20,186 nucleotides of DNA from Bugula neritina (taxonomy: Eukaryota; Animalia; Bryozoa): NCBI GenBank assembly GCA_964035545.1, contig CAXIUT010000232.1, forward strand, positions 1 through 20,186, written 5' to 3'. How positions within the stretch are numbered: the first letter of the stretch is position 1; each line of letters starts with the position of its first letter. The position numbers were made by a program, and so were the translations under genes. Of this stretch, positions 12,246 through 18,030 are shown piece by piece. The notes beneath the pieces were generated by a model. The model was not told the origin of the DNA. It made no database searches and saw only the letters and a program-made list of their open reading frames with translations.

Positions 12246-13669
12246 ATGTACCAAGAATAAAATGAAGACGATGAGAAGTATATTCCCTCACATCTGCTGG
12301 ACGGTACTACTCCCTCATTTAGACGATGATCTTCCTACTAGTACAACTATGAAAGCCACTAAAACTTCATAACATTAATTTGCTTATTCTGCTCCTCTCA
12401 TGCCGAACACTCTTGCCTACAGAGTACTTTTAGATGAATTAAGATTGAAGAAGATTTTTTCCAGTAAAGAAGAAAATAGTAAGCTGATCAAAGAGATAGA
12501 GAGGGAATTTAATCTGAATGGGCTCTTGCCAATTCTGTCAGAAAGTAATTTTATATTTATTTTAGATTGAGTTTGCAGAACTAGGGATAGTTTGACAGTT
12601 ATGAGGGTGAGATGGTCGAAATGCCTTAAGCTAACTACTACCCTATATACTCTCCTTAGGAGGAAATAATGAATAATATCCACTATGTATTTGAGTGGTC
12701 AAAAGATCAATACGGTTCTAGAAATATACAAAATGCACTTATGAATGGCAATTATCTCTTCAATCAAAAAATATATCAGATATTGGCACCACATTTCAAC
12801 TATCTTGCTTATCATAAATTTGGAAACTATGTGTTACAGGTATTGTTGGATGTTTGTACATAAGGACAGAGATAGTAAATTCAGGATATAGTTATCAAAG
12901 AAATATTGTTTATGAGTTTACATAACTATGGGTGTAGAGTAGTGCAAAAAGTTATCTAACAGTTGGATAGAGACATTTCTAAACAAAAATAAGTAGTAAA
13001 ATAGTTAAAAAATCAATTCAATCAACTAATTCTCAATCAAAATGGAAATCATATTGCACAAAGAATCATATAAATCTTTGATGGATCAACCATTCAATCT
13101 CTAAGCTATCTCATTTCAAAATAAGTATTAATCATTAAATACAGCTTAATAAATTATCTTTTCATCCTTTTGGCTGCAGAGTAGTTCAAAAGTATCTCTA
13201 GGCTGGTAGTGATCAATAATTAAAAAGATAGATTATGGACAGATTGATCTAACTGACCCTTCCTTTATCTAAATGCCAATATGGAAATTATATCGTTCAG
13301 TTTATAGTTAACAGCTAACTAAAATAAATATAAAAAGTGTTGGATATCCTTTTGGATAATTTCTTTTAACTATCCAGAAATAAATATGCTAGCAATGTTA
13401 TTGAAACAGTTATCAAAAGAAGAAATAAATATTTTATCGAAAAAGCACTCCATATCTTATCCACATCTAAAGAGTAACTATATATTAAATTTAGAGCAAT
13501 ATAATTAGCTAAAGATCACTATGGAAACTATGTAATTCAAAGTTTAATCGAGCAAAGCAACTCATAAAGAAGATCTATTCTAAAAAAAGTATTTTTATAA
13601 GGAAATCACTAACTCAACAGATCTCAATACGGAAGACATGTTCTTGCGCAACTAGATAAACATAAATGA
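12246..13669 (+). CDS. Pumilio/PUF RNA-binding protein with 8 repeats, about 440 aa
   Basis: ATG 12246, TGA 13667-13669. Introns 12304-12322 (19 nt), 12424-12443 (20), 12545-12565 (21), 13125-13144 (20), 13474-13494 (21); the two 21-nt ones are in-frame and less certain. Repeats: DQYGSRNIQ, HKFGNYVLQ, HNYGCRVVQ, NQNGNHIAQ, HPFGCRVVQ, CQYGNYIVQ, NKYASNVIE, DHYGNYVIQ, then YGRHVL. Confidence 0.93.
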
Positions 13670-13765: not shown

Positions 13766-15138
13766 ATGAGCATCCTGGCTACCAACCTCAAGAAATCTAA
13801 GGGATCAGCTTCCTCCAAAGACCAAAACCTTTCCTCGTAACAAAGAAATTGTTCTGCCTATGATTATAATCGTTCAACAGTCAAACGTCTGTTCTCATCT
13901 GTTTTTTCAATCGTATCTATTTTGACATTCAGATCGACAATGACCAGGAAATCAGTCACTTCGATTAGTATGACCATTCATCCAAAATTGATAGAATACT
14001 CAATAATACAGAATTCCTCACACATCTTCATAACAAAATTAGAAATTAAGGGTTCTATTAAGGCTATAAATTACCCGTCCTTAGACTCTCAATACTTCAA
14101 GATAAAAGTGCAGGCTACTTCACCAACTCATTTTAGTTGGATCAGGGTGATCTATACAGTGCTATGAGCAAATTTGGATAACTCAATAAAATTATTTTAA
14201 CTAGAGATCAAAAAGAAGCATATATCTTCTTTAATACCTTTGTCAATGCATATATCTGCTTTAAGTTGCTAAGTAAAGTTAATTTGGCTTCTGGAAACTC
14301 GTAAATTAGACTGGAATGGATTCATAACAGTGGATATCAGCATGAAGTTACTACATAAATACAAAATTTTGCAAGTTTAATAAAATGGGAATCTATGGCT
14401 GAAAGTTCTAGAGATATAAGTGAATTTGGAGAAGAATTTTCATCTTATGGAGGGAGACAAAGCAAATTGACTTGTAGATATGATATTCAAATATAAAATT
14501 AAAGATAATTTCAAGTAGCCAGAAGGATAATAGGACCTAAAGGATGCAATATGAAACGAATTATTGATTAGTCTGTTTCTCAAGATATCAAAAACAATGC
14601 TTAAAACCTCAACTAACTTTTAAAACTTAGATTAAGAGGTAGAGGGTCTGGGTATAAAGAAGGTCCAGAACAGCTATAATCAGTATAAAATTTGCATTTA
14701 TGTGTTAGTGCAAAAGATTAAGTAGTGTATAACCAGGCTTGTTCAAAAGTAGAAAAACTACTTTCATCGATTTACCTGGAATATGCCGAATGCACAAAAA
14801 GACAAGGTAAAATAAGCTAGCTAAAAATAAAGAAAATAGCCCTAGGACAAAATCCCACTTTAGAATAAAACAACAGCTATAACAACAATACAATCAAAGC
14901 CTAACCTCAAGGAAACGATGAGATACCTGAAAGAGTCTAAGGAGAGTAAATCTACAGAATATCTCCTCAAAAAATAGCATAATTACTATAGTTGAGAAAC
15001 AAAGCAAGGAGAGAATTGAATTTTAGCTAAGCTGATAGAATAAGAAATTATTTACGAAGTGTTGGGGTTTGTCTAATAGACGAGAAAGGTCGTAGGGGAA
15101 GAGCCAATGAAGTAACTACATGGAAATATCTCTACTGA
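13766..15138 (+). CDS. RRM-like + KH (KHDC4/SF1-type) RNA-binding protein with C-terminal CysRS anticodon-binding-like domain, 450 aa
   Basis: ATG 13766, TGA 15136-15138, one 20-nt intron 13913-13932; spliced 1353 nt. RRM-like DLYSAMSKFGELNKIIL...EAYIFF...IRLEW. KH: FQVARRIIGPKGCNMKRII...KLRLRGRGSGYKEG...LHLCVSA. C-terminal IAELLELRNKARRELNFSEADRIRNYLRSVGVCLID...TTWK. Confidence 0.88.
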
Positions 15139-16926: not shown

Positions 16927-18030
16927 TCATTGAGTTGATTTTCTCTTGTTGAAAAACTATTAAAGTTCGTTTAGTTCTGAATCACTGAAATTTGGAATAT
17001 TCACATTGATTTTCACGTATAGGTTTCCTTTCTAAGAAGAATTATGGAAAGGCATTCCTTCTCCTTCTAACACTTTCACAGATCCTGGTTGGGTGATATC
17101 CTACTCAGATACAACTACCAATCTGCCGTCAAGATGAGTTATAGTTTTAGAGAATCCTAGTAAGGCCTGTATAAATAAGAAAGTACTTATTCAAGAGAAA
17201 TAACGATTTAGGTGTGAAGATTATTGTGTAGTCTTGTTAGTTGAGGATGTTAAATTTGTACAAGTTAGAAGACGATATCTGAAGGAGCTCCTTGCATTCT
17301 CTCATCACCCATATTGGTGTATCTCAGATCAGAATTACTAGGTGTCCCTGGAGCAACTTTAAGAGTAAACTACTAAACACCAGGTATGATTTTCTGGGAA
17401 TGGCATAAATGACACTTTCTGCCAATAACTTTTCCTTTTCCTTGGCAGCGAGGACATACTTGTGTATACATATTATAATATCCTCCACCAAGTTAAACTC
17501 TTTTGGTGACTCTTCCTTGTCCTTTACATTCTTGACAAGTAGCTACATCATAAGGATTTTAAGCTCCTGTTCCGTGGCAGTGAGGACAAGCTACTTGTTT
17601 TTAAACTAGCACATCTAATTACTTTCCTAAATAAAAATCTTTCAATTCTAAAAAGACTTTTATTTTGAGTTCTGGACCTTTTAGCTGATTGAAATCGAAT
17701 TGTTGGTAGACAGTAGGATCATTCATTTTTTAGATGCCTACTCGGTCATATAAATATTTTTTATCATCATCGTAAAGGGTTTAATAAGCTACATTTTATA
17801 ATTAGTACCAACATTGATTTTTTAGAATTTCTATCTAGATCCAGATTTAGTATTTCTATCTGGATGATACTTTTTTGATAACTTTCTAAAAGATTCTCGA
17901 ATATCTTCCTGGCTCGCACTAACTGGCAATTCTGCATCAATTTTACAGTACATAAAGCATCATAGTAAGACCTGTCAAGGATCTGCTGTGTGAGGTAAAG
18001 TAAACTGACAAGTAGGGTAATGGTTTTCAT
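16927..18030 (-). CDS. Type I DnaJ/Hsp40 with signal peptide (ER lumen, Scj1/ERdj3-like), 347 aa
   Basis: ATG 18030-18028, TGA 16929-16927. 20-nt introns 17932-17951, 17789-17808, 17167-17186; spliced 1044 nt. Hydrophobic leader MKTITLLVSLLYL; J domain with KYHPDRN and AYETL; zinc fingers CPHCHGTG, CQECKGQG, CPRCQGKG, CHLCHSQK; C-terminal ISLEEALLGF..ITHLDGR and GEGMP, KGNLYV. Confidence 0.94.

Follow-up and report, generated by a model that had tools for sequence, protein, structure and literature searches.

Several domains of aminoacyl-tRNA synthetases have been reused in other proteins, among them the HisRS-like domain of GCN2, the tRNA-binding domain of Arc1p, Trbp111 and EMAP II, and the YbaK/AlaX editing domain. 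In reuse of the GCN2, Arc1p and EMAP II type, a tRNA- or RNA-binding synthetase module is part of a non-catalytic or regulatory protein. The closest described relative of the domain treated here is the C-terminal tail of bacterial cysteinyl-tRNA synthetase (CysRS; Pfam CysS_C, PF23493; approximately residues 403-461 in E. coli; structures 1U0B and 3SP1). In 1U0B the anticodon-binding domain comprises residues 403-461 (PMC12684709). Anticodon contacts of E. coli CysRS are made by Arg427, Trp432, Asp436 and Arg439, of which Arg427 hydrogen-bonds G34 (PMC13449415).

We analysed a stretch of 20,186 bases, here called the window, and found a gene at 13766-15138 (+ strand) for a product of approximately 450 aa, in which a CysS_C-like tail follows an RRM-like domain and a KH domain. 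The ciliate tail has the helix-helix-hairpin layout of the bacterial CysRS tail, and the two share the pattern R..AR...[WF]..AD.IR....G..L.D...TTW with the same anticodon-contact positions. It differs from bacterial CysRS in lacking the Rossmann catalytic core and DALR_2, being joined to an RRM-like and a KH domain instead, and in carrying a 7-residue Arg/Gly-rich insertion in the hairpin. At the position of Trp432 in E. coli CysRS it has Phe, which some bacteria have too. The principle is the same as in GCN2, Arc1p and EMAP II, but the donor domain is another one and the partners are classical mRNA-binding domains rather than a kinase or a stand-alone protein. In its subtype the KH domain agrees with that found in KHDC4 (BLOM7), SF1-BBP and STAR proteins, with an intact GXXG loop and LRG[RK]GSG, whereas those proteins have no CysS_C tail. 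We suggest, with a probability of about 0.8, that the gene encodes a modular protein of RRM, STAR/KHDC4-like KH and CysS_C domains, in which the tail would be a third RNA-binding module.

Chromosome, genetic code and gene model

Telomere repeats occupy both ends of the window, C4A2 at 1-82 and G4T2 at 20088-20186, which makes it a complete macronuclear chromosome of a ciliate, 20.2 kb long. In the mixed assembly of 216 Mb to which it belongs it is contig C241. Contigs of more than 33 Mb in this assembly (C1 and C7) contain standard-code, intron-rich CysRS genes belonging to the host, and the tRNA-synt_1e matches in the assembly come from exons of the host's CysRS on contigs of very large size. 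Set against C241, these large contigs show that the ciliate was sequenced along with another organism, as its cobiont or as a contaminant of the assembly. A CysRS candidate on the ciliate-code contig C291 (L150, 2823-6002, - strand) was rejected, since it is actually a cytoplasmic-type leucyl-tRNA synthetase; it matched the CysRS catalytic profile weakly.

Close relatives of the chromosome occur in environmental assemblies, activated sludge among them, and the occurrence in activated sludge fits a peritrich. The gene order of metagenome contigs (L152-L156), including activated sludge, is near-identical to that of the window.

TAA and TAG encode Glu, as in the peritrich nuclear code (table 30), and TGA is the sole stop codon. 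The RRM-KH-CysS_C gene contains 25 TAA/TAG codons; when aligned to eight homologues these mainly face E (39) and D (25), and several of the columns are E throughout. In a metagenomic orthologue of 60% identity, 13 of the 25 codons are GAA or GAG. In addition, the HSP90 signature at 311-346 reads K-TAG-V-F-L-R-TAA. Together, the homologue alignment, the orthologue codons and the HSP90 signature confirm that TAA and TAG were correctly read as Glu in the original prediction. Reading them as Gln (code 6) was rejected, because the homologue columns and the GAA/GAG codons of the orthologue favour Glu.

The gene has two exons and one intron. In brief, exon 1 (13766-13912, + strand) comprises 49 codons beginning with the ATG at 13766, and exon 2 (13933-15138, + strand) comprises 401 codons in a different frame, followed by the TGA stop at 15136-15138. 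Exon 2 is open under the ciliate code and aligns to homologues over its full length. The intron between them (13913-13932, + strand; GTATCTATTTTGACATTCAG) is 20 nt long, starts with GTA, has an A at -6 and ends with AG; it joins the two frames because 20 is 2 modulo 3. The end of exon 1, ...NRSTVKRLFSSVFSI, is kept as ...NRSTVKRIFSSVFSI in the metagenomic orthologue, and the pattern NRSTVKR[LI]FSSVFSI is conserved there in a frame unlike that of exon 2. Three metagenomic orthologues (L152-L154) have a 20-nt GTA...AG intron at the identical position, and the geometry is the same as that of the intron at 1880-1899 in the HSP90 gene. The gene model is thus supported at the sequence level by the conserved 20-nt intron. 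An alternative model with a 44-nt intron (13837-13880) was rejected because the 20-nt intron is conserved in the orthologues, and a start at an internal Met within the RRM was rejected because it would truncate that domain. The assembly yielded a single copy of the gene.

Directly upstream, with a gap of approximately 100 nt, is a gene for a PUF/Pumilio-repeat RNA-binding protein (12438-13669, + strand; Pfam PUF, E 2e-11, in the piece 12660-12860). The window also encodes an HSP90-family protein (260-2900, + strand; Pfam HSP90, E 8e-15, in the piece 1217-1336), whose gene contains the 20-nt GTA...AG intron mentioned above, and a DnaJ-type chaperone with a CXXCXGXG zinc-finger domain (17079-17936, - strand; Pfam, E 1.9e-6, in the piece 17376-17492).

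Domain architecture and distribution of the family

The RRM-like domain (YKLPVLRLSI ... IRLEWIHNS) is encoded at 14065-14331 (+ strand). It was assigned by alignment alone to the RRM of homologues, the stop-free pieces of the window falling below the Pfam RRM threshold, as did homologues other than P0034, P0036 and P0037. In these three, Pfam RRM_1 (PF00076) was detected at 21-38 bits (38.4 for P0036 and 29.5 for P0037). The Stentor orthologue, modelled with AlphaFold at a mean pLDDT of 85, comprises an RRM, an extended KH domain and, at its C-terminus, the tail domain. The RRM of this model has the canonical order beta-alpha-beta-beta-alpha-beta at pLDDT above 90, and RRM proteins lead the PDB matches of the model. 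A long helix (H226-253) lies C-terminal to the KH domain in the same model.

The KH domain is a type I domain of the KHDC4/BBP kind (14464-14793, + strand; Pfam PF22675, KH-I_KHDC4-BBP). PF22675 matches two stop-free pieces of the window, 14509-14568 (E 1.8e-5) and 14617-14676 (E 2.3e-3), and scores 59-91 bits in homologues. The intact GXXG loop, GPKG, is encoded at 14533-14544 and the signature LRGRGSG at 14632-14652 (both + strand). A KH domain with these two motifs had been described from the sequence before, and the Pfam matches on the stop-free pieces confirm it. As to a role in splicing, the likeness to KHDC4 and SF1 is a family-level analogy only.

Upstream of the tail, the window ORF aligns to the RRM and the KH domain and contains no HIGH/KMSKS synthetase core. 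We did not find a Pfam match to tRNA-synt_1e or DALR_2 in any full-length homologue; with E. coli CysRS as control, tRNA-synt_1e, DALR_2 and CysS_C were all detected. The absence of a synthetase catalytic domain, as originally claimed, thus holds in the full-length homologues. The RRM-KH-CysS_C protein is not a synthetase and, having no catalytic core, cannot aminoacylate.

A phmmer search with the 35-aa piece encoded at 15031-15135 against 1.84 billion representatives gave 39 matches at E <= 1e-3. These include full-length RRM-KH-tail proteins as well as proteins with two or three tandem tails. A search with the Stentor protein gave 294 relatives. RRM-KH-CysS_C proteins are found in ciliates and in many dinoflagellates, and all are annotated as hypothetical. 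The ciliate members come from Tetrahymena thermophila (TTHERM_00444130, XP_001023275.1, annotated 'hypothetical protein'), Stentor coeruleus (SteCoe_17985 and SteCoe_31074), Blepharisma stoltei and Climacostomum virens, and the dinoflagellate members from Gymnodinium smaydae, Pyrodinium bahamense and Alexandrium spp. Some precomputed annotations list PF23493, PF00076 and PF22675 together. The architecture had been put forward as novel; it proved to be uncharacterised, yet it is found widely among ciliates and dinoflagellates and is partly present in precomputed Pfam annotation. We did not find the family in the literature on the architecture, on TTHERM_00444130, or in one review of dinoflagellate RNA-binding proteins.

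It could be argued that the gene is a fusion artefact, created from adjacent genes or by mis-assembly, the tail being what is left of a synthetase gene that has decayed. The combination of domains is unusual, and 'cysteinyl-tRNA synthetase' is indeed a name that automatic pipelines give to C-terminal fragments. We consider this explanation highly improbable. The frame is open from the RRM through the tail in the window, on a contig that is complete from telomere to telomere, and Pfam reveals no remnant of a catalytic domain in the full-length homologues. The same order of domains recurs across independent genomes and, in many species, within single transcripts. That a detached CysS_C is fused to RRM and KH domains in one ORF, as predicted, is upheld. 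The 3' part is probably not a separate transcript, the full architecture being present in single MMETSP and EukProt transcripts, and since many members stem from such single transcripts the fusion is not an artefact of gene models.

Three further proteins, P0010 (from Biecheleria cincta), P0004 and P0032, have two or three CysS_C domains in tandem and neither an RRM nor a KH domain. Pfam CysS_C scores 53.5 bits on P0010 and 49.6 bits on P0004. These two three-copy dinoflagellate proteins have the same detached CysS_C with a lengthened hairpin and conserved contact residues, but differ in the tandem arrangement, in the absence of RRM and KH, and in a loop insertion that is shorter and of another sequence. 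In the tandem proteins of dinoflagellates the detached domain has a second use, separate from that in the RRM-KH proteins. Two C-terminal fragments from JGI/IMG metagenomes, P0002 and P0159, have been named 'cysteinyl-tRNA synthetase' automatically, a misnomer caused by the CysS_C tail.

Relationship of the C-terminal tail to CysRS

The tail, a CysS_C-like domain of approximately 57 aa with two helices and a beta-hairpin, is encoded at 14959-15135 (+ strand) and was recognized by profile, fold and individual residues. The C-terminal sequence quoted in the original prediction is the table-30 translation of 14971-15135, followed by the TGA stop at 15136-15138, and the E. coli CysRS C-terminus with which it was compared is that of cysS in MG1655 (L009).

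Database searches were made with stop-free pieces of the window protein and with natural homologues. An HMM was built from the C-termini of 136 proteobacterial CysRS encoded in genomes, and the window protein was scored against it locally in translations with table 30, with table 6 and with X at every TAA/TAG. The scores, in bits, were 33.8 with code 30, 35.2 with code 6 and 30.3 with X-masking, compared with 10.1 for the best of 5000 shuffles. When the window is translated in all six frames, the tail is also the only match to this HMM (E 7e-10). Its match to the CysRS tail is not due to chance. Using hhalign, a profile of the eukaryotic domain was matched to the bacterial tails with 99.15% probability (E 4e-19, 51 columns).

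Pfam CysS_C, which has a cut-off of 23 bits, scores 22.9 bits on the homologue P0001, 97% identical over the last 35 aa, and 22.7 bits, just under the cut-off, on P0013. In homologues CysS_C is the best or only C-terminal Pfam match, at 13-23 bits in single-copy and 50-53 bits in three-copy proteins, and the top clusters of an ESM Atlas feature search carry PF23493. The stop-free 35-aa piece of the tail alone gave no match in Pfam, in phmmer against PDB sequences or in BLASTP against the E. coli tail, because it is too short.

P0001 was modelled with AlphaFold from an alignment that contained family members only and no CysRS. The model has two helices (H33-48 and H52-64) and two strands (E67-71 and E83-87) at pLDDT 86-92. 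In a Foldseek search of 350,542 chains its first matches were E. coli CysRS in complex with tRNA-Cys (1u0b_B) and Borrelia CysRS (3sp1_B), the former aligned on 54 columns at an rmsd of 1.6 A (prob 1.00, E 0.045). An exhaustive VIA-align scan placed 3sp1_B first (Z 7.7, rmsd 2.5 A over 52 residues; next 5.4), with chain residues 426-480 aligned to the model. Taken together, the sequence profile and the matches of the predicted fold establish that the tail is homologous to the anticodon-binding domain at the C-terminus of CysRS. The CysRS-like tail that had been predicted is in this way borne out by HMM, hhalign, and AlphaFold with Foldseek, P0001 serving as the model.

The E. coli residue numbering was checked against cysS of MG1655. 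The equivalents of R423, R427 and W432 are R, R and F, encoded at 14995, 15007 and 15022, and those of D436, R439 and D451 are D, R and D, encoded at 15034, 15043 and 15079 (all + strand). As first described, the alignment is gapless from the R423- to the D451-equivalent, and the TTW (T456-W458 in E. coli) is present as well, at 15115-15123 (+ strand). R423 and D451 of E. coli CysRS we take to be anticodon-contact positions like the other four. All 48 family members share R, R, F, D, R and D, and R76 as well, and the final W is found in 47 of the 48; conservation of the contact set in orthologues, on which the prediction depended, is thus complete across these members. The same six columns are invariant in the 136 bacterial tails, except for K at R427 and F or Y at W432. 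It should be noted that some of the conserved residues of the contact set may be structural and not base-specific, because the same positions are the most conserved of the fold.

The hairpin loop contains a 7-residue insertion, RGRANEV, encoded at 15094-15114 (+ strand), which appears as a 7-column gap in the bacterial profile in hhalign. It precedes the TTW, makes a basic loop rich in Arg and Gly and is specific to the family; bacterial CysRS do not have it. Within the loop R76 does not vary, and conservation of G74 and G77 is at least 90% (alignment A1). The pLDDT of the P0001 model is lower in the inserted loop.

The main rival to an RNA-binding tail is a module for protein-protein interaction or dimerisation, that is, a UVR-like helical hairpin from which RNA binding has been lost. 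The UVR domain of UvrB mediates the contact between UvrB and UvrC. With the P0001 model, C-terminal (UVR) domains of UvrB come next after CysRS in Foldseek, and Pfam UVR gives a weak match on P0001 (E 0.003). The likeness to UVR lies in the two-helix hairpin, residues 33-64 of the model. However, the UVR match covers these two helices only (32 columns), whereas the match to CysRS covers the whole domain (52-54 columns). Moreover, the base-contact equivalents are all invariant and a conserved Arg/Gly hairpin loop has been gained, and this points to binding of nucleic acid. A role in protein interaction is therefore improbable, since the whole domain including the hairpin matches CysRS and the contact set is invariant.

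Proposed function and significance

From the conserved sequence and the predicted fold we infer, on good grounds, that the tail binds RNA. In the proposed arrangement, the tail would dock on a splayed trinucleotide in a loop, GCA-like, or on the anticodon loop of tRNA-Cys itself; single-stranded RNA adjacent to the loop held by the tail would be bound by the KH domain and the RRM. RRM, KH and tail could jointly provide a composite specificity in post-transcriptional regulation. The isolated tail may bind RNA too weakly to be specific by itself.

A more restricted possibility is that the protein senses or escorts tRNA-Cys specifically, as the HisRS-like domain of GCN2 binds tRNA, and does not bind mRNA hairpins. 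The contact residues are as in CysRS, whose only substrate has a GCA anticodon. On the other hand, recognition by CysRS also requires U73 and the shape of the tRNA, which are read by domains absent here, and RRM and KH partners are typical of proteins that bind mRNA or pre-mRNA. An exclusive tRNA-Cys function, suggested by the residues, thus appears rather unlikely.

Returning to the tail as one RNA-binding module among three, we tentatively speculate, from sequence and model, that in alveolates an anticodon reader detached from CysRS might serve as an RNA module specific for both sequence and shape, with tRNA-Cys, its fragments or GCA-presenting mRNA hairpins as possible targets. RRM-KH-CysS_C proteins would then couple tRNA-like signals to the fate of mRNA, and the three-copy proteins of dinoflagellates would employ the module a second time. 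This extension is itself doubtful.

The reuse of synthetase modules is known as a theme, and we found no report of reuse of CysS_C outside synthetases in the literature searched. The surprise is lessened by the fact that the architecture is widespread and partly present in automatic annotation; the family is uncharacterised. On the practical side, automatic pipelines mislabel fragments of the family as 'cysteinyl-tRNA synthetase'. That CysS_C is fixed in a family of ciliates and dinoflagellates with its contact residues intact suggests a small, portable reader of a defined RNA loop, an idea that the Tetrahymena member, TTHERM_00444130, makes directly testable.
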